A stretch of DNA of 62,816 nucleotides, taken from positions 1 to 62,816 of the forward strand of contig MNCI01000134.1 in the NCBI GenBank assembly GCA_015680685.1, in the 5' to 3' direction. The DNA is from Gnetum montanum (lineage: Eukaryota; Plantae; Gnetophyta). How positions within the stretch are numbered: position 1 is the first letter of the stretch; the number at the start of each line of letters is the position of its first letter. The notes beneath the pieces are model-generated. The model was given only the letters and a program-made list of their open reading frames with translations. It was not told the origin of the DNA and did not search any database. This document shows, piece after piece, positions 2,648 to 34,241 of the stretch. Position numbers and translations under genes: made by a program.

Positions 2648-2736
2648 TTATTTAGATATATAGAGGGGAATAGGCCTTTTGTTGTGGTTGATTCCTTCAT
2701 GATCATCCTTATTGATGATATAGGTGGGATTGATTG
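2648..2736 (-). pseudogene. 3' part of PLAT/LH2 paralog A, separated from its 5' part by the Copia insertion
   Basis: Joining 7579 to 2736 reads KKWITPINPTYIINKDDH, which aligns with RPWLTPVHPIIVVDLRNC of the 14908-15656 paralog. Confidence 0.65.
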
Positions 2737-3197
2737 TTATGTGTTAAATGTGTTTAATTATTAAACATGGTTTTTTTACTTATCCTAGTCTTTAGGAATT
2801 ATCTTAGACATTTGGTTGCTATTTTCATTCTTTAGAAATTGAATGGTTGACTGTTAGAAAAGTGGAAGGCTTTGCTGTTATAGAGGTTGAAGGATCAATC
2901 ATTATAGAATTTAAAGGATTGACTGTTATAAAAGTTATTATTTTCCATTAATGTATTTGCCTATTTAAAGGCCATTATCAATTGAACAAAAACATACAAA
3001 TTCAGTTACCTTTGTTTGTCCCTATTTTGTTATCCTTTTTTATTTAAGACTAGTAGTGCATAGCCTCAAAGGCTGATAGTGGTATGGAAGCTCTGTTTAG
3101 GAGGCTAGAGAGAAAGCCTAGTTTAGAAGGCTAGAGAGAAAAGCATAGTAGTGCACCCAATTTAGAAGGCTCAAGAGAAGAGCATAGTAGTGCATAA

Positions 3198-6100
3198 ATG
3201 GCCTCTACAAATTTTGTGCAACCTGCCATCCCACATTTTGATGGTCACTATGATTATTGGAGCATGTTGATGGAAAATTTCATGAAGTCTAAGGGGTACT
3301 AACAAGTTGTTGAAGATGGTGTAGTAGCACCCACAACTGAGGTTGTGCTCACAAATGAACAAAGGAAGAAGCTAGAGGGACTGAGGCTAAAATATTTGAA
3401 GGCAAAAAATTATTTATTTCAAATAATTGATCATTCTATCTTGGAGACTATTCTTAGCAAAGAGACTTCCAAGGATATTTGGGATTCTATGAAGATGAAA
3501 TATCATGGGTCTTTGAGAGTAAAGTGCACATAGCTTCAAGCCTTGAGAAGGGATTTTGGGACTTTGAAAATGAAGGATGAAAACTTTGTTATCAACTATT
3601 GTGAAAGAACAATGGGGATATCCAATAACATGTGATTTCAAGGTGAGAAGATGGATGATGTGATTATCATTGAGAAGATATTGCATTCCCTATCCCCCAA
3701 GTTTGATTATGTTGTTTGTTCAACTAAAGAATACAATTATATTGATGTACTTTTCCTTGATGAACTTCAAAAAAATTTTCTTAGTCCATCAAGAAAAGAT
3801 GAATTGAAATTCAACTTCTAACAAGCAAGCTTTGAAGGCTTCTACTTTTACTTATTCCTCAAGAGGAAGAGGTAGAGGAAGAGGAGATCAAGGCAATAGA
3901 TATGTCAGTGGACATTTCAAAGGGGATGGTGATAAATTTCAAGGAAAAGGTAGCGGACAAGATGAAAAATCTAAGGTGGAATGCTTTAGATGTCATAAAT
4001 ATGAACATTATCATTTTGAATGCTACATTAAACTACCTAGTGACAAAGGAGAGAAATCAAATTTTGTAGAAGAAAGGAAGTTTGAGACTTTGTATGTGGG
4101 TACTAGCTACAACAACCATATGTGTGGATGTAAGTCTTCTTTTTCTTACTTAGATGAAAGTTTTCATTCTATAGTAAGTTTTGATGATTGTTATACTGTA
4201 AATGTAATGTAAAAGAGGGGATATTAACATTAGAACCAAGAATGGTTTTGTAGAAATAATTTCCAATGTTTTCTATGTTCTTGATTTAAAAAGCAATTTG
4301 TTAATTGTTGGTAAATTGCAAGGGATGGGTTAGGTAACAACCATTCAGAAGGGTGCTTGTGAAATTTATGATTCTTTAAGAGGAGCTATTGTAGTTGTTA
4401 AAATGAGCTTCAAAAAATTATTTCCATTAAGGATTGAAAGTGCTCAATCTTGCTTGAAAGCTGAAGTAAAAGACCCAACATGGCTTTGGCATTTTCATTA
4501 TGGCCACATGAATTTTGGAGAATTAAAGACTTTGCAACAAAAACATATGGTGACTAGTCTTCCTCAAATTACAATTCCTTCTAAAGTTTGTGAAGAATGT
4601 GTTATTGGTAAACAACATTGTTCTCAATTCATTTAAGGAAAATCATGGAGAGCAAAGAATGTCCTTGAGCTAGTTCACTTAGACATTTGTGGGCTAATAA
4701 AACCATCTTCAAATTGAGGTAAGAGGCACTTAATCACCTTCATTGATGATTATTCTTTAAAAAGTTGGGTTTTTTGTTTGTAGGAGAATTCCAAAGCTTT
4801 TAATTCATTTAAAAGCTTCGAGGTGTGTGTTGAGAATGAGTTTGGAAAGATCGTTAAGACTCTTCATACAAATCATGGAAAAGAATATTATTCAAAAGAG
4901 TTTAATGTTTTTTGTGAGAATCATGGCATTCAAAGATAGCCCATTGCCCCCTATACACCACAAACAAAATGGTGTATTAGAGAGGAAAAATATAACCATC
5001 CTCAATATGGTGAGAAGCCTCTTGGCAAGAGGAATTATTCTAAAGAGTTTTTGGCTAGAGGCTATGAATTGAAGCATCCACGTTTTGAATAGAAGTTTTA
5101 CCTTTCTTATTCAAAACATGACACTAGAAGAGGGTTGGAGTGGAAGGAAACTAGCAATGGATCACTTTAGAATCATTGGTTGCATTGCCTATGCACATAT
5201 CCCCAATGAGAAGAGGAAGAAGCTAGAGGATAAGGGTGAAAAATGTGTCTTTCTTAGCGTAAGTGAAGCATCCAAAGCATATAAACTATATAATCCTTTG
5301 ACAAAGAAGATTTTGACTAGAAAAGATGACATCTTTAATAAAGAGAGTACTAGCAATTGGAATGGGCAGTAGCCTACTTCAATTATTTTTTATAGTGAAA
5401 TTACAAACTTTGTAGCACTCAAAACTACAGAACCTAGAACTAAAAACTTCGAAGCACCAAGAACTATGGAGTTAGAGACTTTACCAACAACAAAAATAGT
5501 TGAATCTCACTATATTTGTAAAAGATCCTTATTGATGATGGATTATGAGGTAATTGGGATTGACCAATCTAATGACCTAATCATCCACTTTGCATTGTTT
5601 GTAGATTGTGATCCCACAACTTTTGAAAGTACTATTAAAGAATAAAAATTGAGAAATGAAATGGAGGATGAAACTGAAGCCATTAAGAGAAATGGTACTT
5701 GGGAGCTGGTTAATCTTCCAAAAGGGCACAAAACCATTAGTGTGAAGTGAATCTTAAAAACTAAACTAAAGGAGACTGGTGAAGTTGACAAGCATAAGAT
5801 GTGAGTGGTGGCTAAGGGATACAAGCAAGATTATGGAATTGACAATAAAGAAGCCTCTTCTTCTATTGAAAGGCATGATACAATCATATTGGTGATTGCA
5901 TTTGTAACACAAAGTTTATGACCTATCTTACAAATGAATGTCAAGTCTACATTCTTGCATGGAGACTTGGAGGAATAGGTATTTATTGATCAATCCCTTG
6001 GTTTTGTGAAGGTTGATAGTGAGAACAACATGTATAAATTAAAAAAGGCTTTGTATGGGTAAAACAAGGTCTAAGAGCTTGATATAGTGATATAAATACC

Positions 6101-7112
6101 TATTTTTCTAAGGGATTTCAAAAATGTCCATATGAGCATACACTTTTTACAAAGATTGATGGAGGAAAAGTGCTCATTGTATGTTTATATGTTGATGATA
6201 TTATTTTTACTAGGAATGATAGTGATTCATTTGAAAAATTTAAGAAGTCAATGATGGATGAGTTTGAAATGGCTAATCTTGGAAAAATGCATTACTATCT
6301 TGGCATGGAAGTAGTGCAATCCCCCATTGGAATGTTTATTTCTCAAAAGAAGTATGTCAAATAAATTTTGAAGAGGTTTAAGATAAAGGATTACAATCCT
6401 GTAAGCACTCCAAATGAGATTGTCTTGAGGATAAATAGAGATCCTAAAGGAAGCAAGGTGGAGGCTACACTTTACAAGAAAATTGTTGGGAGTCTAATGT
6501 ATTTGACTACAACCAGACCCAATATAATGCATGGTATGAATATTATTAGCAAATACATGGAATATCCAAAGAAGATGCATTTGTTGGCTACTAAAACAAT
6601 ATTTTGTTACTTGCAAGTGACTAAATATTTTGTGTTGTTTTACAAGAAAGGTGAGAAATCTGATCTTGAAGGATTTACTTATAGTGATTATGCAAGAGAT
6701 CAAGATGATAGGAAGAGCACTTTAGGAAATGTTTTTATGAAGGGCATAGGGGTTGTTTCATGATCATCCAAGAAGCAATCAATTGTCACATTGTCTACCA
6801 TAGAGGTTGAATTTGTTGCTGCAACAACTTGTGCTTGCCAAGGCTATTTGGCTAAGAAAAATTCTTAATGAGCTATATTTCAAGGAAGAGGGGGCTACTA
6901 TAATTTTTTGTGACAAAAATTCCATCATAAAGTTATTCAAAAATCCTATGCTACATGGAAGAAGCAAGCATATTGATGTAAGATTTTACTTCTTGCATGA
7001 TCTATGCAATGATGGTATTATTGATTTGGTGTTTTGTAAGATTGAAGATGAACTCTCTGATAATCTAGCCAAACCCCTCATGTTATCAACATTCCAAAGA
7101 TTGAGAAAATAG
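3198..7112 (+). pseudogene. Copia gag-pol, multiple stops and frameshifts
   Basis: MASTNFVQPAIPHFDGHYDYWSMLMENF; zinc knuckle CFRCHKYEHYHFEC; LWHFHYGH...CEEC; QNGVLERKN; CLYVDDII; YSDYARDQDDRKST; HGRSKHIDVRFYFL. Confidence 0.95.
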
Positions 7113-7289
7113 CTTAGATTCTACATGTTGAATGATTCCTGTTAGACTAATAATTTGCAAAATTTTAGTTTACAAGAGGGTGTTAAATGTGTTTAATTGT
7201 TAAATATGATTTTTTTTGTTAGTACTAGTCTTTAGGAATGATACTTAGGGATTTAGTTGCTATTTTTATTCTTTAGAAGTTGAATGTTC

Positions 7290-7420
7290 AACCATTATAG
7301 AAGTTGAAGGGTTGGTTATTATAAAAGTTGAAGGGTTGGCCATTATAGAAGTTGAAGGGTTAGCCATTATAGAAGTTGAAGGATTGGCCATTACAAAAGT
7401 TAAAGGTTTGACTATTATAT
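7290..7420 (+). repeat. 24-bp tandem repeat (ccattatagaagttgaagggttgg) in the Copia LTR
   Basis: About 5-6 units in the 3' LTR versus about 4 more diverged units at 2847-2935 in the 5' LTR. Confidence 0.85.
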
Positions 7421-7578
7421 AATTCATTATTTTCCTATTTAAAGGCCATTATCAGTTGAATAAAAAAAGTAGAAATTCAGTTGCATTTGTTTGTCCTTAT
7501 TTTGTTATGTTTTGTTGTTTTCTTTTATCTGAGGCTAGTAGCGCAAAGGATAGTAGTGCATAGCATTAGATGCTAATA

Positions 7579-8058
7579 GAGTGATCCATTTCTTAACTAA
7601 GAAGAATTGATCAATGGAAGAGGCATTGTATGCATTGTTTATGACCTAAACATGGCTACAATACTAGTTCAAGAGAGTGTTGATGCCATTTGATTCCAAA
7701 ATGATCTTGCATGACACCAATCCTAGGCACATCTTCTATCCATTGAAGAGATCTATATTTTCAATATGGAAGGAATCCCAATCAGATCTCATGAGTACAA
7801 TATTCTTCAAATTAGAAATCATGATGTCATTGTCTTCCTTCTCTAACAATGTCATGCTAATCACCAGACTTATTCTTATGAAGCCCTTCCATTCCATCTG
7901 TATGAACAACACATACACATAATTTTTATTTACATACGAGTATTTGATGGACTATGAAACTGTCATTGTTGTTGTAAATAGTCACAACAGGAAAAGTACA
8001 CTCACCATTATCATCATGAACATCTTGATCTTCTTTTGCTATTGTGAGATGATGCCAT
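7579..8058 (-). pseudogene. Secreted PLAT/LH2-domain gene, paralog A (intronless, in-frame stops)
   Basis: MASS..KKIKMFMMIMVSVLFLL*LF signal peptide, then NKNYVYVLFIQ...MTLLEKEDNDIMISNL...DSFHIENIDLFNG*KMCLGLVSCKIILESNG...*YCSHV*VI...QFFLVKKWIT. This follows the plant PLAT pattern CxY...TG..GTDS...FERGNLDIF..CL...WY...VEV...WL. Confidence 0.85.
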
Positions 8059-8110
8059 TGTTACTTGCTTTAGGTTTCTAGTTCTAAGATAGATTTCATG
8101 AAGGCCAACA

Positions 8111-8146
8111 TTGTTGTTGTTGTTGTTATTATTATTATTATTATTA
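8111..8146. repeat. Compound (TTG)n(TTA)n microsatellite between the putative TATA and 5' UTR of PLAT paralog A
   Basis: ttgttgttgttgttgttattattattattattatta. Confidence 0.9.
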
Positions 8147-8199
8147 TATAGTTTTAAATTTTCCAACTATAGAGTTGTAGGGATCACAAGCAACATGAG

Positions 8200-10592: not shown

Positions 10593-10732
10593 NAAGTATA
10601 CATATATGACATATATTTATATTCATTTTCTTTTAATAATAGTACAAAGTTAGTTAGAGTATTCAACTATTGGTTTGTAAGTCCCAAGTTTGATTTTGAT
10701 AGGTACGTTGATTTAACACCATTATCTTTAAA

Positions 10733-11977: not shown

Positions 11978-12402
11978 TGTCAGGATCAATGCCTGCTGTT
12001 TGCATTTGAGAAAACAATTGCAGAACTTCTACCAGGAATCCTTTTGTCGCATAAGCTGAGATCATGGTGGTCCAAGATAGAACATTCTTCTTCGGTACTT
12101 CGCCAAACAGCTGTCGTGCCTCCAAGCTTTGAATACAGTATCAACGTTTTGGTTTGAATGTAAGGGTTCATCATGAATCCTGTCTGAAAGAGTTTGGGAT
12201 GTAGATTTCTTCCTGTCTGAATATAGGTCTTACGCAGCAATGCATCTCTGCAGAGATCTTGCATAGCTTGGAATATCATGCAAGCTTTGGACATAGAGAA
12301 CCGGCTGGATCTCCATCTGAGAATTCCGGTAGTCCATCTTCCAAAGACAGAAGTTGCTAAAAATGAAGCATCGCCCATGAGGTCTCTACCAGGGCGAACC
12401 AT
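11978..12402 (-). pseudogene. PLS-class pentatricopeptide repeat (PPR) gene fragment
   Basis: Transit-peptide-like N-terminus, then GRNLHPKLFQTGFMMNPYIQTKTLILYSK, frameshift near 12125, EARQLFGEVPKKNVLSWTTMISAYATKGFLVEVLQLFSQMQTAGIDPD; similarity ends abruptly. Confidence 0.85.
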
Positions 12403-13504
12403 AGTTGCCGGAAATGGGAAACGATGCAACGGCAAAAAAATCAGGTTGCCTACAAGAAACGATAAATTGTGTATATTTCTTTGTTCATCATCATGGAAAG
12501 AAACAAGTACAAGGATAAGTTTTTCATCATATAAAAATTGTGTATATTTCATTAAGAACAATTTTGGTCAATTTGGGCGTGGACTTTCGTAATTCGATTG
12601 CCCTTGGAAGTTTCCTTTTGTGGGCGTGAAATACATGTGAAATTTTCTGCATTTGCGTTTTCGTTAGGCTGATTTGATGTTTTAATCTTTATCAGTTGAT
12701 GATGGTGTCGATCTGGAAGCACAAAAACTTCATATTCAGAAATTGATAAAATTCAGGAAGGCACTGTAAAATATTCAGTCGTGTAATACAAAACCCAACT
12801 ACGTGGTTTATTGTAAGCAAAACACAGGCGAAACGTTATAATTTTGCGCCTTAACCACTTCTTCGATTGCCGTGATACCCAGGGAAGGAAATCCTAATTC
12901 CTTTCTTTTAGGAACTTTAATCATTTATAATTTCATATTTCAGTCATATACTGATGAGGGCTTTACTTTTAAAAAAAATTGTCCATCATAATATCATATG
13001 ATTTGTTTTAGATGTTAATTTCGTAAGTAAGAACTTCTGTTTTTAGCATTCAAGGATTAAAATATACGTGGGGCGCAGTTCCGAGTTTGCAAAATTGTAA
13101 GGGAAGTTTCCCGTGTTGCAGGACGAAAAACAGGGTCAGGTCAATCTAGATGTTAAAATTAAGCCAGGACCGACTTATTAAAAGAAAAATTGAAGGAATT
13201 ATAAACTGGTTTGCTAAATCTAAAAGGTCTCAAAGGTTTCAATGAACATAATTAAAAACATCAATTTCAAAATTAAATGACTCACGTCACTGAGGCCGAA
13301 CATATTCTTCTGATCAAACATTTCTTTGTAATCCTGTTTAAGGAAGAGCTGCCAAAAATAACAAAAACATTAATTATATTGAGGTGTGGAACCTTGAAAT
13401 AATTAGATAACCTCCCAGATATATAGTCTAAGTGTATTTACACGTGTTCTGAATTTAGTTCGTGACAGATGCATGTTGAGAATAAAATAAAAAAATAAAA
13501 AAAA

Positions 13505-13657
13505 AGAAATGAAACCGGTAAAAAACGCAATGAAACGTGAAAGAAACATTTCAGTCTGCCAACAAGTGACGCTTACTGTTCATGATAACGGCATTTTGAA
13601 ACGGGATCCCGTTTCCGCAACCAAAAATGCAAAACGTTATGAATCCATTGCGTTTCC
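13505..13657. mobile_element. Possible hAT-type subterminal region (gaaacg/cgtttc motifs)
   Basis: Clustered aaacg/cgttt motifs and the perfect palindrome gaaacgggatcccgtttc near 13598-13615; no TIR or TSD confirmed. Confidence 0.35.
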
Positions 13658-13659
13658 AG

Positions 13660-14080
13660 AGGGAGGGAGGGGGGGGGGGGGGGGGGGGGAGGAGTTGTTC
13701 CCCCTGCCCCCACGTTAGGCCCTTTTGGGGTGTTCATGGTTAGAGCCCCAACTCTCCTTGAGGGTTTGGAGGCCTTCTTGCCTGGGCTAGTAGCCAGGCG
13801 ACGACGATTTTCTTTGATTATCTGGGCAATACCTATCATGTGGTCTCTGATAACGTTCTCGATCCATTGTAGTGTTTGGTTGTATGATTGTGGGGCAGGG
13901 TTGGTGTCTTATAGAGCATTCCCTCAACAGCTTGCTGTGGCCCCCTGGCACTAGACGGTTGCCTCACCATGTGTTCGCTGGGGCTGACATCTTCAGTCGG
14001 CGAATCCCTCTGCAGAGCCTAGGGTTTGTACATTGATCATTTCTGCTGTATTACAACATGTTTAATAAAGTATCAGAAAA
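13660..14080 (+). mobile_element. Possible 3' end of a non-LTR retroelement, preceded by a long poly-G tract
   Basis: GC-richer non-coding block ending ttaataaagtatcagaaaa; G-run at about 13669-13689. Confidence 0.35.
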
Positions 14081-14092
14081 CGACTGACGATC

Positions 14093-14398
14093 ACTAGCTT
14101 AGTTATATATATTTATAATATATATCTATAAATTGGCCGATAGAATCTTATAAGATTACAAGTAAGAAGTTCTTTGAGTAAAAATTTTCACGACTTCTGG
14201 ACGAAGAACAAGTGTTCTGTACCTTATTCTTCCTAAGGATGGGTTTTTTGAAAAAAAACAAATTTGGGTTTTTAAATCTTGTTCTTCGTCCAGAAGTTGT
14301 GAAATTTTTTACTCAAAATAACTTCTTACTTGTAATCTTATAAGATTCTATGGGCCAATTTATAGATATATATTATAAATATATATAACTAAGCTAGT
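14093..14398. repeat. 306-bp foldback (MITE-like) with about 120-bp inverted arms
   Basis: 14093-14212 is the near-perfect reverse complement of 14278-14398; 65-bp spacer. Confidence 0.95.
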
Positions 14399-14738
14399 TT
14401 TAAAACAAAGGACACGACCAAAATAAAATGCACACAATTTTAACTAAAGTGAAAAAGAAGTGCACGATGAAATGCGAAAATGGAAATTCAACCTCGGAAG
14501 TCTCCGACCTCTTTGAAAATATTTTATCGGAAGACTCGTTACCTCACCCACCCTGCCAGGCACGCCACATCTCAAAAACGGAATATGTCTGCCTGAAACC
14601 CGCATCTCAAAATCGGAATATGTCTGTCTGTGTTTCAGGAACGGGCGAATGCAGGGCTCACCCTCATATAACTTAACATACGCTGCATTATTTACCATTT
14701 ATGAACGCAGGCGGTACATTTATGCCTGAGACAGGCCT

Positions 14739-14883
14739 GGCGGTGGGTCGGTGGCATTTAAACGTACTATTACTAAGTGGTGAGAGCGCATCTATACGCT
14801 AAATAGTGGTGAGAGGGTATCTATACGCTAAATCGCTCTCACCACTTAGTACTAGTACGTTTAAATACCACCAAACCACTACC
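14739..14883. repeat. Compact inverted repeat/hairpin just 3' of PLAT paralog B
   Basis: ggtggcatttaaacgtactattactaagtggtgagagcg (14750-14788) pairs with 14834-14872; a 29-bp tandem duplication spans the left arm end and loop. Confidence 0.9.
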
Positions 14884-14907
14884 AAAAACCACTGTGTTAC
14901 TCATCTT

Positions 14908-15656
14908 TCAGCTCATTATGATAATACTGGGAGTAGACGTGATGGAAACAACTTCTTCAGAAAAGATAGATTGGAGTAGGCTGCCGTGACCCTGGCCGTA
15001 GAGGAGGAAGCTGCCATGGCCGTGGCCTGCACTGGTACAGTTGCGTAGATCGACTACGATGATGGGGTGCACTGGTGTGAGCCACGGACGGACGTTGCAG
15101 CGCTGGCTCACGAAACTGCAGTTGTTTGGGTTGCTTATGACCTCTACCCGTTTGACGAACCAGGAACGGGGCTTTCCCTTGGGTTCTATCTGCAAAACGA
15201 GGAGGCGCGGTGCCGTCTCCAGGCACGTCTTATTTGCCAGGAAGAAGTCCAGATTCCCTCTCTGACAGCAAATACAATTGGGAAGTACTGAAAATTTGCA
15301 CAAATCTTTAAAGTTCACTTCCTCATGATTGTCGGTCAGCGCAGCGTTCACGACCGGGGTCGTTCCTGGCCCTGCCAGCCGACCGTCTTCACCAACAGCC
15401 CGTATATGCATTTCCTCTCATTCTTGTGAAACCCAGGAACCCAACATAAGAAATGAAGAAACAAATTAAGGGCGCTAGTGTGTCTAGCTCATCAAATCAG
15501 ACCTAATCAAAGATAATTGAATAACGTATGAATGATTCATTTAAATCACTCTTGTAACTTACCGGGATGTCCCCCATGGGCCTTGCGGTTGCCATTGCTA
15601 AGTGCGCTTGAGACCATCAGGACCATTTTCATGGACTGCTGCTGTGATGATGCCAT
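14908..15656 (-). pseudogene. Secreted PLAT/LH2-domain gene, paralog B (exon 1 15563-15656, intron 15423-15562, exon 2 14908-15422); two frameshifts as assembled
   Basis: MASSQQQSMKMVLMVSSA/LAMATARPMGDIP|NERKCIYGLLVKT/GRLAGPGTTPVVNAALTD...QRGNLDFF...CL...SWFVKRVEV...PWLTP...NC...GHGHG; gtaagt donor and pyrimidine-rich cacaag acceptor. Confidence 0.85.
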
Positions 15657-15717
15657 TGTTATTGCTCTGATTGCTGGTTCAAGGCTGGCTTTGATGAAGC
15701 TTGCCTTGCTCGTGGGG

Positions 15718-15725
15718 TATATAAA
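15718..15725 (-). promoter_or_regulatory. TATA box of PLAT paralog B
   Basis: Minus ccctttatataccc about 62 bp upstream of the ATG at 15656. Confidence 0.55.
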
Positions 15726-16699
15726 GGGAAAGAAAACATCTTTGGGTTGAGAAACGCTGCAAAGACTACAGCCAATGAAGTGACACTTTACTAATAACTT
15801 TATGTAAGGCTTAAGGGATAAGATCATGATCCACATATACGTGGTCATTATTATGATGGTGCAGGTAGTTACTGGTTTCCAAGATTATGATGTTGCAGGT
15901 AGTTACTGGTTTCCAAAATTGAGTTTAGGTTCAGTTCTTTTTTCCCATTTTTTAATTTGCATGAAATAGTCGGAAAATATGTCGGGTTGGCAAGAATCAC
16001 TATAAATTGAGAAATCAGGCCAAGTTATATTTAAAAGTTGCAAAAATATTAATTTCTTTTTAAAAATAAAGTTTGATTATAACAGTGTGTCGACTCAACT
16101 AAGGTCACCAAAATTTTTAATCCTGTCACTAATGTATAGATAAATCAGATCTTTCACCCAGCTAAAATCAGATCTTTCACCCAGCTAAAAAGCTATGATC
16201 TAAAATTATATTGAAACTGAGAAAGAAGCTTTATCTTTGATCAGGTCCGTAGATATAAAGATAAGATAAGGCGCTTTATCTTTGATCAGGTCCGTAGATA
16301 TAAAGATAAGATAAGGCTACTGATTGGCACACGTAATCACGAATGATTCCTCCTCGCTTCCACCACCAATCAATTCCTTTGGTGCATAAAGGCTACCTTT
16401 GATGCATAAAGGCTACGGATTCATCAAAATGAGCCAGAAAGGTTGTGGAATCTGTACCTTTCCAGCTGCCATGCAATTTCTCGTACAAATTGACAGGTAA
16501 GTAGGTAACGCAGACCAACGGATACCAAATGTATACATGCGTTCGTATCCATGCCTTCCATCATCATCTATGATAATAACTACATGCATGTTCTCAGTTG
16601 ATTGAAAAACTTAAAATTCTTGTGCCTCATCTCCGTTTCAGGTCCATGACTACCAAAAGGCAGAAACAGGTGCCGAAGTCGATTAGTTATTATATTACG

Positions 16700-16923
16700 T
16701 GGAGGTAGAAGTGAGAATAGAGCAGGAGTAAAGGCTTTGAAGAAGCAGAGGAATGCAAACTGCAACAGAAATCCATGGCCTTGTATGCAGCCTTAGCAAG
16801 ATGAATGCTATCAAAATTCAAGTAACACTAAGGATCCTTACCCAGAATCGTCGTCTTTGAGCCAGTGCTACTGCAACGGGCTAAGCCAGGGACTGTAACT
16901 GGCTGCAATTTCACCATGATGTC
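16700..16923 (-). other. Orphan spliced exons (82-bp exon 16842-16923, 82-bp intron 16760-16841)
   Basis: tgcag| acceptor, |gtaag donor and ttctgttgcag| acceptor; open frame DIMVKLQPVTVPGLARCSSTGSKTTIL; product not recognised. Confidence 0.4.
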
Positions 16924-17339
16924 CTGCATAATCTCGGATTCTGCTCAGCTCAAGGCAACAAGCTATTCTAATCTATTCTAATCTACTCGGATTCTGCTCA
17001 GCTCAAAGCAACAAGCTATTCTAATCTACTAATCTACCGGCTTTCACAGTATCTTTTTGATTTACAGTGATATTTTATTATTTTACCGTTCTTACTTGAT
17101 TAGTCTTTTTTATTATTCATGGGTAGAATGATGTCCCGAAACAAAATTAAAGGAGACCCTTCTCATGTTCATCCAATGCCGTCCCAAACAAATTTTTGAC
17201 AACATTAGTTTGAAAGTTTTAATTCCAAGTTTATACATATTTTTTAAACTAATTGTTCATTGTTGATAGTTTTTTTTTCTTTCACTTTTGCATGGTTTAA
17301 GGCCTTTTCCCCATTAATTTTGGCACCTTTTTAAAGGTA

Positions 17340-19110: not shown

Positions 19111-19599
19111 CTTCTAATTTTTTATTTTTTAGAAATGTGTTTCCAGGAAAGTGTTAGAGATAAACAAATATCACCTAGTTTTATATTTTTTGACATTTAT
19201 GAAGAGAAGTTGTATATTACCTAGGGAATTATTGAATCACCTGAAAATGCATGGAATCCCACTAAAGTAAAAACAAAAAATCCAAGAGGAAGCCAAAGGT
19301 TGGTTCCTCCCTCTAAAAATCCCTCATATGATTAGCACATGTGGATTAAGGAATACTACAAAAGAATGATTGAAAGCTACAAGATACTATCGATCTTGTA
19401 TAGTAGTAGATTTATTTAAATTATTCCATTCATAGCATCTACGATTCTATGACCTGTTTAAAATGGGATGGTTTTTTCAAACTTGTACATAACTAAATAA
19501 AAGGTAAAATTAAAAGCCATGCCCACATAATTTGAACTCTAAAACTAAAGATTTATTACTATTATGGCAGAAAAATGACCCTACACTAGAACAATTTAA

Positions 19600-22500
19600 A
19601 TAACTTGTTTTAGGTGTTTCTAGTCTTTGGTATCACCAAGGCATGGATATTCGTAAATAGTGTTTTTTAGTACAAATTAGTAAAAAATGGTTAATTATAT
19701 TTAATAGTCAAAAACCTTTCTGAGAAACTATTATCTTGTATGTAACTAATAGCTACTCCTTTTAGCTATCTCTAAATGTAATTATGAAAATCAAATAACG
19801 TTACCAAAATCCTAGCTTCAAATCCTATGTAGCTAATATAGCAAATGAGAGAATTTATAGAAGATGCCAATCTTTAATTCCAAGCTATATATGCTAGCTA
19901 ACTTACTAAAGCTAAACCACAAAACTTTTGCTAAATAGGGCAAGAATCTCGAATAGAGAAATTATTTGAAAACCTTAAAATTATACAAAAATAATATCAC
20001 TTCTATGTTATACTGATACAGAACTAACACTTATAAAAGATATCTCATTCAACCAAAGTAATAAGAACAAGTTAAACCTCATATTATAGAGAAAATAACT
20101 TATCCCAAAGCCAATCACTCACTAAAACAGAGCTATGCAATAGTTAAGCTCGACAAGTAAAGAAAGCTTCTAATTCAAATACCAATTGAGAGATAAAAGC
20201 TAAAAGAGATTTAAAAACATGTTTAGAATGTCATTATATAAACAATATTTACAAGATTTTTCCAAAAGTGACTTATCCTTTTCTTTCCCTCTTTCCCAAT
20301 CATCGTCCCCTACCCCCACCCTTCCTTCTTTTAAACTTTTTCTCTAGGCTTTATATTATTGTCATTGATAGTTATAACCATTTCAAAACTAAGGTTTCAT
20401 ATACCTCACGTTTTCTTCATAGAATTGTAGGTTGTTGGAGAGTTGTGTAGTTTCTTGATAGATTTTCCTTATTCTTTGAATTTGAAGCCTTTCCATTAGT
20501 AACTACTAAGGTAACCTCCCATGGCTAAGAAAAAAATTTATAGCTTGATTCGTTGCATCTAGCTTAGTACTGTAAAGATTCTNTTTTATAGCTTGATTCG
20601 TTGCATCTAGCTTAGTACTGTAAAGATTCTTGATAACATTGTCAACTCTTCTGTCACCTACACTTAATTCTATTATAGAATTGATTATTTGAGTTAATGC
20701 AGCTCTTGTGCTATAACAAGTTTTCTTCAATTCTAATTTCTTCTCAGTAGTTTTAGTTATTATCCTTGTAACTATCATCATCATCATCATATCTAAGAAA
20801 CTTTGTTTATGCTATGGTAGTACTTCTCTTTTCACTTTGGCTATGCAATATAGCTCTTGAGCTCTTCTTTCTATCTAAACAAAAATGGCTTATCTCTCTT
20901 CAATTTTTCTAATCTCAATTCTAGTATATTGTATCCATTTCTTATTATGGTTAATCTTAGTAATTATCACTTGAAGGTTTGGCAGTGCTAAGTAGGAATG
21001 ATTTGTAGCCTTGTCTCTTTTTTTTTAGCCTATTCTAATTTAGAGCTTACAATAGATAGTCTTTCTTCCAATTGTATCATATTTTATTCTTTATTTTCTA
21101 GCAATTATTTGTTGATAGTAATCATTCTCTTAAGCTGCTTGTTTTCTTCCTTGGAGTTCCTCAAATTGGATGTCTGCTACTCATTCTACATAAGATACTC
21201 CTTAAGCTTACCTATCTAATTATCAACTACTTGTCCCATGTCTTTAACTAAAGTAGCTATAGTCTTCGACATGTCTTGATGAGACATCACTAGCTTCTAT
21301 TGTTCAGTTTGTGGATAATATTTCTTATAGAAAAATATGACACTCACTTCTATCTTTGGCTTAATGGAAAGGTTTTGGCTCAAAATGATTTTCCCTTCTT
21401 TTCCTTTAATCTTGAAATATTGAACTACTCTCTTCATCAAGTAACTTGATAAGAAGTCTAGGGTTGTAAAAGCTAATGATGAGTTCTCCTCTTCTTTTTT
21501 GTTGTTGTTGCTATAGCTTCTTTAGCTTCTATTGTTCCAATAGCTATTGCTATTGTTTTTCTTTAATAGCTTTTATGGGTTCAAACTTGATTTTTCTAAC
21601 TACCTTTACTCCTACATATTTGGGTCCATTGAGTGGAAATCTTTCATCTTGCATGGCTTCTTTTGGATTCTGTAGCTTTCAAGAAAAATAATTTTCCTAT
21701 AGTAGAGCTAAATACTCATCATGAAAGCCCCTTGTCAAAGGATGTTCTTTGCATTTCCTCCATCTACATAGTTCAATAATTGGTAGATCATAGACAGTGA
21801 ATAGAATATTCATTGATAAACTTCCTTTTAACTATTTTGGAGCTTCATCCTTTGCTCAATTTACTTCTATATCTATACCTTTCAAATAAAATACATCTAT
21901 TTTATCAAGTTTATGAACTTTTCTTATTTTAGTAGCTAAGTATATCCTCCTTGGGGCCATAGGAAAATCACACTACTCTTTATACCTCTTAGCCATTCCT
22001 CTCAAATGCCTTGTATTGTTGAATTTCCCAAAGCCAAACTTCAAAGGAAAAACTTCCTTGTGCTTATAATTATTCCTAAAGGTAATTTTCCACATTTGTA
22101 TTCCCACTTCAAATACCACCAAATAAGGGGCTACAAATTTGGGTAACTTGAAAGCTTTTTCTTCAAAACCTACTATTAGCATGCAGGTGTAATGGACATG
22201 TAGAAAGACAACTTCATGACATTTTCCTTTTATTTCTTCAAATAGCTTCTTTTTAATTCTTGGTAGAAAAGATTCTAAAATAAATTTAACGTATGAGGGT
22301 ATATATAGTTCATCAATAATTTTAAAGCTTGGATGTCCAAATAGCTTCTTTGATATATAAATGGAAAAAAATCATAATAGGGATCTTTAGGGTGAGCTCT
22401 TCATTATGTTACATAACTAATGAAAATTGGGGCTATTCTCTCAAGCTTGGAAATCTCACTTAATAAATAATTCATTAAAATAAGCTTAAATTTAATTGAG

Positions 22501-24313: not shown

Positions 24314-27300
24314 TGTTGCGAATGAAAACCTTGGTCACTGGAAAAAAACCAAGGAGCCTTGGTGCAGCAATATCCCAACCCAAAATCCCCAAGGCTGCTA
24401 CAAAAAAAAATGGGATTCAAGGTGCCCTACCCAGTTTGCCAGATCAACTAAGGACTTATGAAATTCAAAATGTGGAAATAATAAAGAAGAAATAGAATGC
24501 AAAATTGATAATAGGTCTAAAATAATGCACAGATGATAAACAAATATATTTCTTACACAAAACCCAAAACTTAAAACTTTATTAAGAAAGAAAATAAATA
24601 ATAAGTTTGAGAAATATGTACAAATGGTGCCTAGATGAGAAGAATGGAGGGATCACATATGCAAGAGTTCAAAGCCCATTGAAGCCAATGTGATCTAATC
24701 CATGATCCAAGTGCTAAGCCACTCCTGATGCTATCGAATCTTCCTTCACTACTGCAACCTCAGATTTGCAAGTTGGATCATTATTGGGGGTAAAAAAAGT
24801 AAAAAATTTGAATTCAAGATTGCTCCACATTGGGGTTTGGAAAGCCTAGAAGTGTAGTGTTGACAATCAAAATCCACAAATCTTATAGCTAAAACGCTTC
24901 CATGTTGGGGTTCAAGAAAATGCAAGTATGGGAACTTGCAAGATCTCTTGAGTGCTTGAGAATGCCCCAAATGTGGAATTATGAACAATGTTGTGTGTAT
25001 GCCAAAAACTGCTTGATAATGTTGAACTTGCTCAAAATTTTGGAAACTTGAGAAAAATTTCTGAACTTGTAAATGGTGTTGGAGACTAGTTTTCATAGGT
25101 TCCTTGGGCCATGAATGGAGCTGCAAAATGGCCATGATTTGGCTACAAACATGGCTGAAAATTGGTTGTAAATTGGCTGCCAAATTTGGATGAGCTATGT
25201 GCTCAAATTTTGAGGGTTACCATACATAGTAAGTGCTTTTCCCCATAGCCATTCCATTTACTATAAATAGTAACTAGGGCACACCTTTCACACTAGCAAT
25301 GAATCTTCTATGTTGAGCTCTCCACCATGCTTGTTAAAATGGCTGGTTGATGTTGAAGTGCATGAAGTGATGAATTTTTTCTTTTGTAGCTTCCATGCTA
25401 GGGGATATAATTTTCCATGTTGAGGATGAAGATTTCATGCTAGGGGAAAACTTCCACACTAAGGGGGGAAGGTTTCCAGGTTATGCATGTGGTGTCCATG
25501 TTGAAGAGGGAAAGTTTCGAAAACCCACATCCTTCCACATTGGGGGTAGGTAAGATCTACCTCCTACATGTGTTTCCAACATAGAAAAATGTATACCCCC
25601 CATAAAACCCATCAAATTGCTTTTTTGGCATTCCAAAAGGCTTTTTTGACCCCCTACAAGCCCAAATATAGACACTAAATGAATTTTTGTACTTGACGAA
25701 TGAGGCCTTGACCACTTTTAAGGATTTTTTATCCAAAAAGTATAAAGTATGTGAAATTAACCATTATGGGTTATAGTTTTCACATTTATAATGAAGCTTT
25801 TCCTTGCATTTAATAAGGTGAAAGCTACATGATGAATATTGGTTATAACATGCAAATTTTTGTCGTGTTTCAATGGCTCCTCTTTGTTGATGCTCAGAGG
25901 ATTGACCCAAGAGGCACTGACAAAGAATAGAAAACACCACTTCATATTATAATGCTATAATGCATACTAGTCACATGAAAATCAAGATATCCAGGTCACC
26001 AAGGTTGCTAGTTTAAGGTTGTGGTAGGCCATGGTACCAATTTAAGGGCCTCGTTGTGTTGCTAGTTTAAGGTTGTAGTTGACCATTGAGAGTAGGCTCA
26101 CTTGTTGATAATTGTTAGCTACATGTAGTATCTCTTTAGATAGAAATGATTGACTAGATTTGCCAACTCATTTTCAACCATGTCAGCTATTCTACATGCT
26201 ATATTTTCATAAGCTTTGATGACAAGAAAGGACCCATCATAGTTAGATAGGAATTTGTCTACATGCTCATGGATGGCCTTGAGGACTAGGTCCCCTTCCT
26301 TGATCTTGTGCATGGTTAAGTTATGATGATGTTGTCACTTCTACCTCTCATGATAGTTCTTGATGTGAGCAAGTGCTTGCATACCCCACTCCTTCACAAA
26401 ATCTAGGGCTACTATCCATAATCCCTTGTTTTACCATCATTGATGAAGCCGGTTAAGGCTACTTGGAGTGATGGAACCTACAATTTAAGAGGTAAAATAG
26501 ATTTAGAATCATAAACAAGGCTATAAGGAGTCATGCCAGTTGTTGTGTGATAGGTTGTTCTATATGCCCATAGTGCATGGGCAAGCCACTCATGCCACTT
26601 CCATTTTTTGTTGTTGAGCATCTTCTTGAGCAAGTTGATGATGGCCTTGTTGCTTGCTTCTACTTTTCCATTGACTTGAGGGTAGTAGGGAAACAAAAAA
26701 GAATGCTTAATGCCTAGGTTGTGATATAAATCCTTGGTTTCTCGGCTACAAAATTGAGATCCATTATCCATAACTATGGTCATGGGTATGCCAAAATGAG
26801 CTACAATGTTATCTAGCATAAATTTGCAAACTTGTTTATATGTGGTCTTCCTTAGGGGAATAGCCTCAACCCACATGGTAAAGTATTTAGTTGTAATGAT
26901 GATGAAGCTATGTCCTATAGAAGACTTAGCCATTATAGGTTGAAGCATATTCAATCCGCATGATTGAAATGACCATGTTATCTAGGTTGTATGTAAGTCA
27001 GTTGATGATACATGTATTAGGTTGCTTTATCATTGGCATGTGTCACATCATGTAGCCTTTTGTAAGCAGTTATTTTTCATATGGGGCCAATAGTAGCCTA
27101 ACCATCTAATCTTAGCAACTATGGCCTTAAGTCCTATATGTCCTCCATAAATACCCTCATGAACCTCCTCTAGGATTATTCTAGCTTTTGTTTTACCTAA
27201 GCACTTTAGGAGTATGCCATCATAGGATCATCAACATAAGGTATTATTACCTATGATGACATACTACTTTGATCGCTTATCTATGGTTTTTTTTCTGAGT

Positions 27301-30250
27301 AGTAGTTAGGCCTTGTGAGGATTCACCATGCATAAGGTAAAATTTGATATTGTCATAACACTCCTTAGGAGGAGTAGTATGAATGATGACCAAAAAGGTA
27401 TCCTCAGTGTTCTATGTGATGGAATTAGTATAGTCCATGGTTAAGGTGGAAAACTTGCTAAACACATCTAGTATCACACTAAAGGCTAATGTTGTAATTG
27501 CATTAGCTATGGTGTTTTCATTTCAAGGTATGCATTGGACATCAATGTCTATAAATTATTGTAATAACTACTTCCCTAGGTCACAGTAAGGTTGTAAGTG
27601 CTTAGCTTTACATGCATAGACATCGGTTACTTGGTTAACCACTAGTTGTGAATCATCTTTGATGGCTAGACATCTAATTCCTAGGTTATGAGCTACCATT
27701 ATCCCTCTAATCAAACCCTCATATTCCGCTATGTTGTTGGTACATGGAAACCCAAAAAAAATAGGCAAAGGGTTGGGTCCCACCAGATGGGAATGTTATA
27801 ATGGTAGCAACACTAGCCCCATGGGCAATTGAAGCTTTGTCAAAGTACATGACTACCTCATAACCCTCAAGCACTTGGCTAACTCTGTTAATGTGTTCAT
27901 TAGGGAACTTTGGATCTATGGCTACTTGGTCATCAATAGGTGAAATTATGAGTTGTATGGCTATAGCTTGACCTTTTGTTAAGGATTGAAAGACGTAATG
28001 GAGGTGGAACTCTATAGTTATGGCTTTTCATCGAGATATATGGCTACTTTCATAAATATTGATTGTTATGGCTTTGTGTATGTTGTCCTTGCAAATTATG
28101 TTAACCTGGCTTTTGAAGAGGTAGTGTCTCCATTTCTTCAAAGAGAAGACTAGTGTTAGACAATACTTCTTCACTTCAGTGTATCGAGTCTTGTGGGCAG
28201 CTAACATGTGGCTAAAGTAGTATACAGGCATTTCTACTTTGTCATAATGTTTCTAATAGAGTAGAAAGGCAATGGATGTATCAGAGATGATGAGATAAAT
28301 GTAAAATGGTTTACCCTATTATGGAGGATAGACTATCAATATCTATGTCAACTTTTGCTTAAGTTTTTCAAAGGCCTCTTAGCATTGAGCCATCCACTCA
28401 TAATGAACTCCTCTCTTAAGCAAGTGTTGCATGGAATGTAACTTATTTGTAAGCATAGTGATAAACCTATGAATAAATTGTAACTACCTTGTAATCCTTG
28501 AAGCTCTTTAAGGTTGTTAGGTGCTACTAATTTGGGTATGGACTTAACCTTATTAGGATCTATGTGTATCCCTACTTTAGAGATTGCAAAGCTAAGCATC
28601 TTACCAATATTGACATCGAAGACACACTTCTTGGGATTGAGCCTACACTCATATTTGAGACATTGTTTAAGCACAAGATCTTGGTCATTAGCATGGTCAT
28701 TGGCTATCTTAGACTTCATGGCTATGTCATCTACATAATCATTAAGCAAACCTAACATGTAATCATTGAAAATATAGGTTATGGCTCTCTGGTATGTTAC
28801 TCCAACATTCTTTAGGCCAAAGGACATCATGGTAAAGTACCCAATGGAATCATAAAGGTCATGCTAAGTTTTATGCTTTGGGTTGATCCTAATTTGATTA
28901 TATCCTAAGAATCCATCCATAAAGGACAACAAGGCATGTCTAGCTATAGTATTGATAAGTTGATCAATATTAGGCAGGGAAGTCATCCTTGATAGTAGCT
29001 TTATTTAGATCTTGAAAATTAATGCAAATACAAATACTCCCATTTTTCATAGGCATTACCACTATTTTGGATATCCATTATGCATAATTGATAGCCCTAA
29101 TGAAACCTACTTGGTAGAGCTTTAAGATTTTATCATGAACTACTAAGGCCAAATTAGCTCTAATCTTGTGCACTTTTTGCTTAATTGGTCTAATGCTAGG
29201 ATCTAGTATGATGTTGTATTGGATTAGACATGGGTCTAGGCCTAGCATATCTTTATATGATAAAGAGAATGCCTTACTATTGCTTTGTAAGATCTTGGTG
29301 ATGCCTTGAGCACATTGAGGCTCTAGTGAGGAACTTAGTTTAAGGGTTTTATCTTCACCATTGTGTGTTGTGATAGGAACCTGAACTAGAGAGTCTTTAG
29401 TTATGTCTCCTATTTCTAAGTCAAAGGTTTTGACTAGGTTTTTAGGCCATTCTAAATGTTTCTCTATTGACACTATGCGGTCTACAAGACTCTCAAGCTT
29501 AAGATCTAGCCAATTAGGATCGATACATCATTTAATATTACCGTGAGGTCCATGTAGACACAAAGGCAAATTGATTTGCTCCCAAGTACTCATACTTTAA
29601 TCCTCCATGTTAACCAAAAGCATATTAAGTGGAATTTAGGAAAAAGTAAATAAATAATGTTAACATGCCATAAATCACATGAAAATCTAATGCAATCAAG
29701 GCCATCCAAGGTCATTAGTAAGATAAGGTCAATTTAGAAAAATGCAATAGAGGTGAACAAAGATCACATATAGGTCAAACAAGGGAAAGTATAAGGCTAC
29801 AAATGGTCAATAAAGGCCAAAATTTTGCCAATATTAGTCCTTAGTGGGCCATGATGCCAATTTATAGTCTTGGTGGACTATGATGCTAGTTTAGGGCCTT
29901 AGCAGGGCATGGTCATATGGTGTCAAATGATGGTCAAGGAAGGTCAATCCCCACTATTCAATACTATTGAAAGGCCAAACAAAGGTAAATATAGTTGTAA
30001 TAAGACAAACAATGAACATATAAGGTTGTATAAAGGCCATGAAAGGTTAGAAAGGTCAACAAGGCAACATAAGTTAAAAATAAGTCAAAACATTATGTAA
30101 TAAGGAAAAAATCAAGAAAAATAGGCTATATATGATAAAATCTGGCTAAGAAAGGTTAAAACTGATTAGGTTTTGCTAGTTTTAGGCCTTAACAAGCCAT
30201 GTTTTAAGGCTACAAGGTTATTTGATGAGTTCAAACATCAATCAAGGCTA
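24314..30250 (-). mobile_element. Tat-type Ty3/Gypsy element: 3' LTR 24314-25658, integrase, archaeal-type RNase H, RNase H, RT
   Basis: RT MSFGLKNVGVTYQRA...YVDDI; RH PVYYFSH..YTEVKKYCL; aRH CTNNIAEYEGL...DSQLVVNQV; INT WVEAIPL...DNGSQF...YYPQVNGKVEASNK; LTR ends tgttg...ctaca. Confidence 0.9.
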
Positions 30251-30899
30251 TTGCTAGGCTATTTGCATTCAAAAATCAATTGTCAACGTGGAAACAAGGA
30301 TCCTTAGTATGGAAACCAAGGAAAATAGATTTTGGGATTCTTAGAGGTCAAAAATTAAGGTTTTGAGACCTTACCAAGGTAGCATAGGGTTAGATCCATT
30401 AAAATTAGGTACTCCAAAGGTCTATAAATGCCAAAAGTAAGTTCTTAAGCCTTCCCCCCTTATTTCCATAGTGGCCAATGTGAAAAAAAGGGGGTTTATC
30501 ATGGAGAATCAAAATCAAGATAAAAATAAGGTCAACTATGGTCAAATAGGTATCTAGAGTCTAGATCTGGAACTTGTGCATATCCCAGCTTCATTCTAAG
30601 GTGATTTGAGGCAAATTTGAGTGTCAAGATGTGTGTCAGAGTGACTTTGCCCCCCTTTTTCCACACTAAGTATAATATCCCCAACATGGAAAAATAGGGA
30701 GACAATTTTTTAATGAATTTAGAGTGATTTATGAGCACTTTGACTAAGTCTCTAGGTCCCTATAGTTGTAGACTTTAATTCTACAAGTTTCTAGCAGATT
30801 TTGGACATGTTTGAAGGCTATATAAGGGTACTTAATGGGGGACCCAAGATATATTCTTGTGTTTTAATGTCAATTTATTTTTTACTCTTACCATAGACA

Positions 30900-32841: not shown

Positions 32842-33842
32842 ATATGTGGCTTTCAAAGGAGTGTTTTTAGTCTAAAATAGGTCATATATGGAGCTAGGAG
32901 ATGTACTATTTCCTTACTACTATTTATCATCATTTACCATAAACACTTAGTAGAGGAAGAATAGGATCTCATTATTTAAGAATTGAAATAGATAGATGGC
33001 TCAAAATTTTAGGTGAAGAATGAATAATTTGATTATATAGCATTTAACATTAATAGCACATGTTCCTACAATGTTAAGCATTGGAACACATTAGATATGG
33101 ATAGGATATTCCAAATGCAAATTTAGTTAAGTTATTTCAAATGTTAAAAAGAACACTTATAATTTTTGTAAGTATGTTTTCAAAACTTATATAGCATGTA
33201 TATTTGTATTGTCTAATATATACAACACTATAACATTTCAATTTAAGTTTCAGTATAGTATACTTCATTAGATGATTCCTCTACAAAAAAGACTCTACAT
33301 GATTAGATATATTTATATAATTACATTACCCAGATTAGAGTTTAAAGAGGAAAAAGAAAACTTTGAGTTTTCACATCTACAACCTTTGATGCATTGAGAT
33401 AGCCATCCTTTATTTATTGTTGGAAAAAATATCTCCTTATGACGTCTTTAAATGACTTTCTATTTCTTGTTGAGAAACTCTCTACCTGCAAAAAATGTAG
33501 CAACTCAAAAGCCCCAAATCTTAAAAGAAATTGAAAATTGAAAATGAACTCAAAATTTGCCTCTTCCTATCTCAAAGACTAGAAGGAAACAAATAGGAAT
33601 CTGCATCTCTTTAAGGTAACTTAAGCTCCATTATTTCGTATTTATGAATAGAGATGGTAGATGCACCTAAGACAGACCCTCAGGATGGCCGCTAAACTAT
33701 CAGTATGGGTAACAGAATGGTTAGTAGTAGTGGTAGTGAATGTGGGCTAACCACCTGACCAGAGATGAGAGAAACTTTATGCCACATTATTTATTTATTT
33801 AGGATAATATTATAATATATTATTAAATACAAGTAAAACAAC

Positions 33843-34241
33843 TTATTTTATTAAGATAGATTGGAAGAAGGCATGGGCATGGGGGTGGGCACTACCATGA
33901 CACAAGCTGGTGCAGTCATGGATTGTGACCTCGAGCTGTGCTAGTGTGGGCCATTGGTCAACTGGGAAATAGTACTCCACAAGCCTGCCATCCTTTACAC
34001 AAGCTAGGCTAGTGTCGACATATCAAATCCTGGATCTCCACTTCATGGCCACAATGGTTGAACAACATCACGCTTACCACTGAGTCTGTTCCTATGTGTT
34101 CCAAGTTGCCCATTCATTCATTCATTTATAAGTTACGTCTGGGTGTTTGATGGGCCATGTAGTTTCCATTGCCAATAGTGGCAACAAGAATAGAACACTC
34201 ACTATCATGAGCATTTTGATCTCCTGATGTGATGATGCCAT
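33843..34241 (-). pseudogene. Secreted PLAT/LH2-domain gene, paralog C (internal deletions)
   Basis: Intact exon 1 (34137-34241) MASSHQEIKMLMIVSVLFLLPLLAMETTWPIKHPD|gtaact; then GNLEHIGTDSVVSVMLFNHCGHEVEIQDL and YYFPVDQWPTLAQLEVTIHDCTSLCHGSAHPHAHAFFQSILIK*; 5' UTR similar to paralog B. Confidence 0.85.

Follow-up and report, generated by a model that had tools for sequence, protein, structure and literature searches.

Do three short minus-strand stretches in the genome of Gnetum montanum encode secreted PLAT/LH2 proteins, or are they the remains of genes that once did? They lie in contig MNCI01000134.1 of assembly GCA_015680685.1, whose positions 1 to 62,816 are referred to here as the window. 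An initial annotation, made from the sequence letters, described them as a hidden, co-oriented set of three secreted paralogues (copies A, B and C) forming a divergent, lineage-specific and His-tailed PLAT subfamily that undergoes birth-and-death. We consider it probable, at roughly 75%, that these 26 kb hold instead a decayed, co-oriented cluster of three plant single-domain PLAT paralogues, none of them able to make the ancestral protein. In none of the three copies does a signal peptide stand in frame with the domain, and in none does an uninterrupted frame run from the start codon through the domain.

According to this reading, the ancestral gene would have encoded a signal peptide followed by a single PLAT/LH2 beta-sandwich, with a short tail at the C-terminus that ended in ...QSI. 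Its product, judged by analogy with Arabidopsis PLAT1, may have been a lipid- or membrane-associating stress protein of the secretory pathway or the endoplasmic reticulum (ER). Copy A would be an old pseudogene, split by a Copia-type element and drifted to background GC, and copy C has lost internal codons. Copy B is the best kept, with a promoter and a spliced intron of 140 nucleotides (nt), and appears to be transcribed in related species; owing to frameshifts of -17 nt and +2 nt, neither its leader nor its first beta-strand is read in the proper frame. Copy B is most likely a transcribed pseudogene, whose RNA would yield no useful protein.

PLAT homology of the three copies

The reference for this comparison is the PLAT-plant-stress family, which includes PLAT1 (AT4G39730), PLAT2, PLAT3 and CaTIN1 from Capsicum, and for which the overlapping Pfam models PF01477 (PLAT/LH2) and PF06232 (ATS3) are available. 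None of the copies reaches the gathering score of either model. The initial annotation had named these models as its check; eight stop-free pieces of A, B and C have no PLAT or ATS3 match in Pfam, and hmmscan with E up to 10 returned 0 families for the 167-residue open reading frame (ORF) of copy B. It had also taken the lack of any profile or structural match as counting against its proposal, and this lack is what was found with Pfam alone, but not with a family-specific profile. A hidden Markov model (HMM) was built from 22 plant single-PLAT proteins, with no window sequence among them, and run over the 2,714 stop-free pieces of at least 15 residues in the six frames of the window. Its top three pieces belong to the three copies, namely the B ORF (3.9e-9), A at 7951-7739 (8.7e-5) and C at 34113-34012 (4.5e-4). 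The fourth rank is taken by the out-of-frame first strand of B, and more pieces of A and C are non-significant, among equally weak chance pieces. The same search gave no fourth copy in the window; the candidates 16698-16808, 46515-46607 and 54046-54059 were rejected, having no supporting DNA or motif order.

Other searches, in which the B exons and the A and C pieces were queried separately, by reference, point in the same direction. With canonical PLAT proteins, tblastn gives E 3e-10 on A, in one frame from the leader to 7583, and 1e-6 on B. When the B ORF was compared by exhaustive phmmer with 1.84 billion (1.84e9) representative proteins, four matches were obtained. The informative one is P0004, a 148-residue single-PLAT protein from a Logan assembly (PF01477 E 1e-13, ATS3 3e-7), which matches B with E 4e-5 by phmmer, with 2e-10 by tblastn and, pairwise, with 33% identity over 119 residues (E 8e-14). 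Another match is a protein with 14 PLAT domains, and the remaining two, P0001 (FG-GAP/subtilase) and P0002 (a repeat protein), were rejected as repeat-inflated false positives. In a word-indexed homologue search, B alone found nothing and P0004 alone found only itself; a profile of both recovered 21 angiosperm proteins with E 1e-17 to 1e-26, named PLAT domain-containing protein 1/3, PLAT2/LH2 and similar. The nearest clusters in the ESM Atlas are PLAT/ATS3 proteins of Streptophyta. By sequence homology, then, the copies are placed in the PLAT-plant-stress family, as initially proposed. Their divergence is also borne out: identity to known sequences stays at 21-33%, and the 1.84 billion representatives include no close relative. 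Divergent plant members of this kind escape the PLAT model of Pfam, and a family-specific profile recovers them.

Structure prediction and phylogeny add less. B was folded as the 167-codon ORF, which lacks the first strand in frame. From the single sequence AlphaFold gave an unusable model, with a predicted local distance difference test (pLDDT) score of 36, and with the family alignment it reached a pLDDT of 66.5 and a predicted template modelling score (pTM) of 0.67. Its best matches in Foldseek, weak ones with E no better than 0.03 and template modelling (TM) scores of 0.4-0.5, are the PLAT domains of lipoxygenases, alpha-toxin, Rab6IP1 and pancreatic lipase. Since the model leans on the PLAT alignment, these matches are consistent with the homology but are not independent evidence of it. 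The tree that had been suggested as a further check was computed by maximum likelihood from A, B and the 22 PLAT proteins, with C left out as too fragmentary and the in-frame stops of A read as X (as in the composition comparison below). Because both window branches are saturated at the length ceiling, their placement is meaningless, and speaks neither for nor against a single local expansion.

The core residues of the family are unevenly distributed among the copies. B keeps RGNLDFF, W84, W110 and L111, with GTTP in place of GTDS and an arginine in place of the second cysteine. Both cysteines and N-I-D-L-F are found in A, and C keeps GTDS and has lost the ERGNLD region. Overall, B has lost about 15 of about 25 near-invariant family residues, GTDS and the second cysteine included, whereas A and C keep some of them.

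A shared start region

Only the 5' untranslated region (5'UTR) and the leader link A, B and C to one another. Exact copies of the 14-mer ACAATGGCATCATC are found at 8061-8048, 15659-15646 and 34244-34231, always on the minus strand and at the three ATGs, against about 0.03 matches expected with at most one mismatch, and 0/100 shuffles reach this count. The start context TAACAATGGCATCATC (8048-8063, 15646-15661 and 34231-34246) is the same at 16/16 positions in A and B and at 15/16 in C, and it is kept in A although the rest of that copy is fully decayed. Such a context, TAACAATGGC, is similar to the plant translation-initiation consensus and strongly selected. In BLASTN, about 60 nt spanning the 5'UTR and the first codons are about 78% identical between B and each of the other two copies, and A and C match at 69% across 85 nt. 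The three co-oriented copies and their similar starts are thus where the initial annotation had put them. In global alignments the DNA similarity is restricted to roughly -45 to +90 of the ATG, and it starts at a common initiator-like CTTCAT, about 25-50 nt 3' of a TATA-like motif in each copy. The leaders of A and C, which have the core VSVLFLL in common, are the most alike.

Beyond the leader this similarity is lost. The mature domains of A and B have 48% nucleotide and 21% amino-acid identity, versus 69-78% DNA identity for 5'UTR and leader, and they are no more similar to each other than to angiosperm PLAT proteins. Leader and 5'UTR are far better preserved than the domain, for which neutral decay alone is an insufficient explanation; part of the contrast is owed to the drift of A from GC to AT and to strong selection on the start context. 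The signal peptide that had been assigned to all three copies belongs to their ancestor and is intact in C, but it is out of frame in A and shortened in B. As for the ORF list, it holds only ORFs of B (167 and 100 residues) and none of C, as had been noted, and nothing of A either, for which fragments had been claimed.

Copy B: structure, probable transcription and frame lesions

The structure of B is known from contigs of public runs aligned to its region (14300-16300). One of these runs, X7, is a DNA run, and three others, X1, X2 and X5, are probable RNA runs, which cover nothing upstream of about 15650-15700, where X7 does, a pattern that fits complementary DNA. All parts of B are on the minus strand. 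The promoter-proximal region and exon 1 (15563-15725) carry the TATA-like TTTATATAC at 15725-15717, CTTCATC at 15699-15693 and the ATG at 15656. They are followed by a GT..AG intron of 140 nt with 34% GC (15423-15562), the coding part of exon 2 (14908-15422) and a 3'UTR (14595-14907, to the limit of one X1 contig). The splice joint 15422/15563 is present in one X2 contig, with GT..AG borders (CT..AC on the plus strand). The intron is retained in other contigs of X1 and X2, and contigs of X2 and X5 terminate at the exon 2 boundary.

In the ancestral frame, the tail of exon 1 (...LAMATARPMGDIP) joins the head of exon 2 (NERKCIYGLLVKTVGWQG) to form the canonical first strand. In the ATG frame of the window, with the observed joint, 31 codons of exon 1 and one junction codon are read before the TGA at 15420-15418. 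The first lesion lies in exon 1. In a variant contig of X7 over 15600-15697, about 32 nt stand in place of the 15 of the window (15601-15615), and these 17 additional bases give back an intact signal peptide of the C type (...SALFMLPLLAMA...). B has therefore lost 17 nt between 15616 and 15600, and with them both the reading frame and part of the hydrophobic core. The leader read from the ATG is only weakly hydrophobic, with a best 12-residue mean of 1.43 versus 2.85 in C. The first beta-strand (15422-15369) is accordingly out of frame, until a 2-nt insertion at 15368-15367 shifts the reading into the frame of the 167-codon ORF (15411-14908). Together the two lesions sum to -15 nt, and the misread interval holds the TGA. 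The ORF contains the rest of the PLAT domain, the GHGHG...GHG...LLQSI tail and an extension of 15 codons. In relatives it stops at 14955, and since in two runs it ends in ...QSIFSE, matching ...QSILIK of C, the last 15 codons in the window are read-through.

These lesions are unlikely to be artefacts. Both are small indels and the frame downstream is open, so B could be imagined intact in the living plant, with errors of assembly or sequencing in the window, but this is most improbable. Both 15035-15423 and 15563-15648 are spanned by gap-free contigs of X2 and X5, independent runs that represent at least two other organisms, and an X7 contig has 0 mismatches over 15302-15412. With the same shifted, gap-free sequence in runs of other organisms, the frameshifts are not an assembly error. 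The X7 variant with the intact leader is no correction of B either, because it differs from it at 8/98 bases (about 92% identical), which makes it another copy or a divergent allele. A separate X7 variant over 15203-15207 has the canonical cysteine instead of arginine at codon 69. These variant contigs are not the orthologue of B, and a better-preserved paralogue or a divergent allele probably exists elsewhere.

The substitutions in the B ORF among related runs look neutral, even though the power of this comparison is small. Out of 12, 10 are non-synonymous and 2 synonymous, for a neutral expectation of 3.25:1, and the orthologue-like subset, with full depth in RNA-like runs, has 6 and 2 (n=8). 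Among the changes of the relatives is one to a stop, at codon 153. A 4-nt insertion close to the 3' end is present in one relative, and Tyr138 and Arg88 of the window are His and Trp in all relatives.

Three further observations concern the 3' part of B. An inverted repeat at 14738-14884, whose 51-nt arms are 88% complementary and enclose a loop of 45 nt, lies 3' of the B stop within the transcribed region; strand-switch joints or replacement occur there in contigs of X2 and X5, and it may be a hairpin like those of miniature inverted-repeat transposable elements (MITEs) or a structural polymorphism. In X7, divergent contigs reach a depth of 56-66, about 10 times that of single-copy sequence, over 14922-15032 (the Gly/His tail) and 14441-14698 (a portion of the flank downstream of B), and the RNA-like runs X2 and X5 peak at 14970-15036; the genome may contain several related copies of the tail region. 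Finally, 14300-14433 is a very high-copy repeat, with a summed X7 contig depth of 12,000-20,000 versus about 4-8 in single-copy parts and many divergent loose ends, probably a dispersed small transposable element.

Is copy B still a gene?

Several points weigh against calling B dead. Its 167-codon frame is open, with an exon-like GC content of 53%. Its depth is notable in small probable-RNA runs and exceeds that of many pseudogenes, and two or three related species apparently express and splice it. The internal ATG at 15411 could be used as a start, and splicing at an alternative AG, 6 bases downstream with exon start 15416, would bypass the TGA and open a continuous frame of 200 codons. In addition, the RNA nature of X1, X2 and X5 is an automated guess, the substitution sample is small and mixes paralogues, and Pfam is blind to every piece of A, B and C. 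B might then be a working gene, producing either a leaderless, shortened PLAT protein from 15411, by reinitiation after an upstream ORF of 32 codons, or a protein of 200 residues via the downstream acceptor, and the two frameshifts would be a tolerated remodelling of the N-terminus. Two more facts are in keeping with this: the sum of the lesions makes the ATG frame and the domain frame the same, and leaderless single-PLAT proteins do exist (P0004 and P0025). We nevertheless find a working gene clearly improbable. The joint actually observed brings the TGA in frame, the first strand of the sandwich is replaced by unrelated residues, and many near-invariant residues and one cysteine are gone. 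The substitutions appear neutral, one relative carries the premature stop and the 4-nt tail insertion, and the fold is poor from the single sequence and reaches a pLDDT of only 66 with the alignment.

A different possibility concerns the family rather than B itself. The family could be alive elsewhere in the genus, as a fast-evolving subfamily of secreted PLAT proteins restricted to that genus, in which the 5'UTR and leader would be conserved, the PLAT body hypervariable and the tail rich in Gly/His and ending in QSI. This idea, which we hold as doubtful, comes from the X7 variant with the intact leader, the X7 contig with the canonical cysteine and the raised depth of the tail region in several runs. 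If it were true, the variant of about 92% identity would be a functional member, the Gly/His tail would possibly bind metal, and the abundant spliced RNA of B could also have a regulatory role. For the window, the decayed cluster remains the preferred reading, and its loci are to be annotated as PLAT-family pseudogenes, B as a transcribed one, and not as novel secreted proteins. The hidden set of secreted paralogues has not survived the analysis, each window copy being disrupted; out of birth-and-death, the "death" half is visible, but the "birth" half is not visible here.

Copy A and the retrotransposon that splits it

The 5' part of A (7580-8103, minus strand) comprises the initiator-like CTTCAT and 5'UTR at 8103-8059 and the ATG at 8058. 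The frame changes after about nine codons, leaving the hydrophobic stretch of the leader (8032-7985) off the ATG frame. The PLAT-homologous stretch (7993-7583) follows, with in-frame stops at 7984-7982, 7954-7952, 7738-7736, 7666-7664 and 7648-7646. One frameshift, five stops and a retrotransposon insertion thus disrupt this copy, which has no intron.

The inserted element (2742-7579, plus strand) is a decayed long terminal repeat (LTR) retrotransposon of the Ty1/Copia type, with LTRs at about 2742-3079 and about 7181-7579 that are 77-82% identical. It has a sequence similar to a primer-binding site (TGGTATGGAAGC), a polypurine tract before the 3' LTR, and ORFs with a gag zinc knuckle and the SH3 domain of the integrase (SH3_retrovirus, E 5e-25), the Copia-type ORFs extending over 3832-7112 on the plus strand. 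No clean target-site duplication was seen around it. Within the 3' LTR, at 7300-7422, a tandem duplication of about 72 nt (7350-7300 versus 7422-7372, 82%) explains part of the length difference between the LTRs. The homology of A stops at 7583, which leaves about 4 nt to the boundary of the LTR (7579). The initial annotation had listed A in two parts (8058-7579 and 2736-2648), and the break between them is due to the insertion of this element.

A probable 3' remainder of A (2648-2741, minus strand) was placed by the LTR boundaries. It contains W-x-T ... K-E-S-T-T ... F-P-S-I-Y-L, in the motif order of the B and C tails and lacking a His-rich segment, and it continues the frame of 7583 provided that 5 bases are counted as target-site duplication. 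The similarity of this tail (2736-2648), as well as that among the CTS...QSI tails, is orderly but not significant alone.

The base composition of A has also changed. GC in the domain is 34% in A, the background level, versus 53% in B, and G>A/C>T differences number 59 in the B-to-A direction versus 14 in the reverse. This shift is the signature of a long neutral decay, probably driven by methylation. A is an old pseudogene whose composition has equilibrated to the background and which a Copia-type element has split, and the locus would allow the ordering of decay, from gene death to Copia insertion (LTRs now about 20% diverged) and GC-to-AT equilibration.

Next to the remainder of A, the minus strand of 1939-2481 holds a His/Met-rich ORF of 180 residues, with one of 119 residues on the plus strand over the same DNA. 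It has no Pfam match, and TRF finds tandem units of 36 and 81 nt at 2147-2342. Although it is in the same frame as the A tail (2736), it lies about 170 nt beyond the ...PSIYL end, with at least one stop between, and it reads as a minisatellite and not as a PLAT fusion.

Copy C

Copy C (33843-34293, minus strand) has CTTCATCC at 34293-34286, its ATG at 34241 and an intact leader, with a best 12-residue mean hydropathy of 2.85 versus 2.6-3.0 in canonical PLAT proteins. A TGA (34124-34122) follows the signal peptide, and a frameshift lies inside a (TGAA)n run. What remains of the domain is an N-terminal fragment at 34113-34012, with GTDS kept, and a C-terminal one at 34022-33846 (CTS..His-rich..FFQSI), ended by a stop at 33845-33843. 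About 50 codons are missing, including the ERGNLDIF motif, and there is no intron. C is an internally deleted pseudogene.

The intron and the relation among the copies

The 140-nt intron of B sits between the leader and the first beta-strand, and A and C appear to lack it precisely (7940-7880 and 34140-34090). The distance from the LAM motif to GT(D/T) is about 90-96 nt in A and 80 nt in C, compared with 92 nt in spliced B, and A reads through the site without a change of frame. At the DNA level, these short stretches of A and C could also be aligned as intron remnant instead of first beta-strand, and neither alignment beats shuffles; MAFFT favours one reading, codon colinearity and tblastn the other. 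Judging from the sequences, we adopt the codon-colinear, intron-less reading of A and C, and hold it as likely rather than certain because the DNA-level tests are not significant.

An intron loss in the ancestor of A and C, an intron gain in B, or an origin of A and C as retrocopies could each explain the difference. In the last case, A and C would be processed, reverse-transcribed copies of a B-like mRNA, later duplicated locally, and not plain tandem DNA duplicates. The lack of the intron in two copies whose codon spacing is colinear with spliced B would fit, and so would the close likeness of their VSVLFLL leaders and a DNA similarity that begins at CTTCAT, near the likely transcription start, with none further upstream. 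We still see this origin as rather unlikely, given that three co-oriented copies in 26 kb suit tandem duplication better, that a TATA-like motif precedes CTTCAT by about 25-50 nt in every copy, and that no poly(A) remnant and no target duplications on either side were seen. The same facts are accounted for by a precise loss of the intron in one lineage, or by its gain in B, and the alignment of the stretch at the DNA level is significant neither way. An intron present in one paralogue and precisely missing in two could inform on intron gain and loss, given outgroups.

Comparison with known PLAT proteins and other systems

The PLAT-plant-stress proteins of Arabidopsis, PLAT1-3, are single-PLAT proteins. 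PLAT1 has a predicted signal peptide, and organelle markers were used to localise its fusion to yellow fluorescent protein (PLAT1-YFP), with discussion of the ER and ER bodies; it is induced by abiotic stress as a target of ABF and promotes abiotic stress tolerance (PMC4232524). The window copies resemble these proteins in their ancestral layout, in which an N-terminal signal peptide preceded one PLAT domain of about 120 residues and a short, variable C-terminal tail. They also share the motif order C-x-Y...T-G, G-T-D-S, RGNLD-F, C...C, G-W-[YF], V-E-V, Q-W-L and R-x-x-C. They differ in their low identity (21-33%), in escaping Pfam and in being disrupted, all three of them, and they are far more divergent than every family member retrieved. 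B and C additionally carry a Gly/His-rich insert before the conserved ...QSI end, and B has lost GTDS and one cysteine.

The insert, which A lacks, is placed between the last cysteine of the family and the conserved end, and reads AGHGHG...GQGHG...LLQSI in B and LCHGSAHPHAHAFFQSI in C. Tails of canonical PLAT proteins are variable and some are His-rich, as in the Ficus and Cyperaceae rows of the alignment. Because His-containing tails are found in canonical members too, the tail is a local variation and no new architecture, and the proposed His-tailed subfamily was not upheld.

The nearest relative of B among the 1.84e9 representatives, P0004, is a leaderless single-PLAT protein, as is P0025 from Acacia crassicarpa (141 residues), and its C-terminus SLLETVV aligns with SLLQSIF of B. 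Both begin at the first beta-strand and keep the invariant residues of the family. They also have a two-residue loop deletion that the window copies do not have, and the ancestral signal peptide of the latter, still intact in C, is a further difference.

Defensin-like and other secreted families of plants form tandem arrays in which a conserved leader precedes a fast-diverging mature region. The copies resemble such arrays in a 5'UTR and leader that are still detectable next to a diverged domain, but differ from them in being dead.

Other features of the window

The window is AT-rich (33.5% GC), plant-like DNA packed with decayed retrotransposons. Apart from the element in copy A, these include a Gypsy-type integrase and reverse transcriptase at 26478-28830 on the minus strand, an RVT_1 match at 48227-48550 and another element with RVT_2 at 62001-62351, and 0 Rfam families were found across the whole window.

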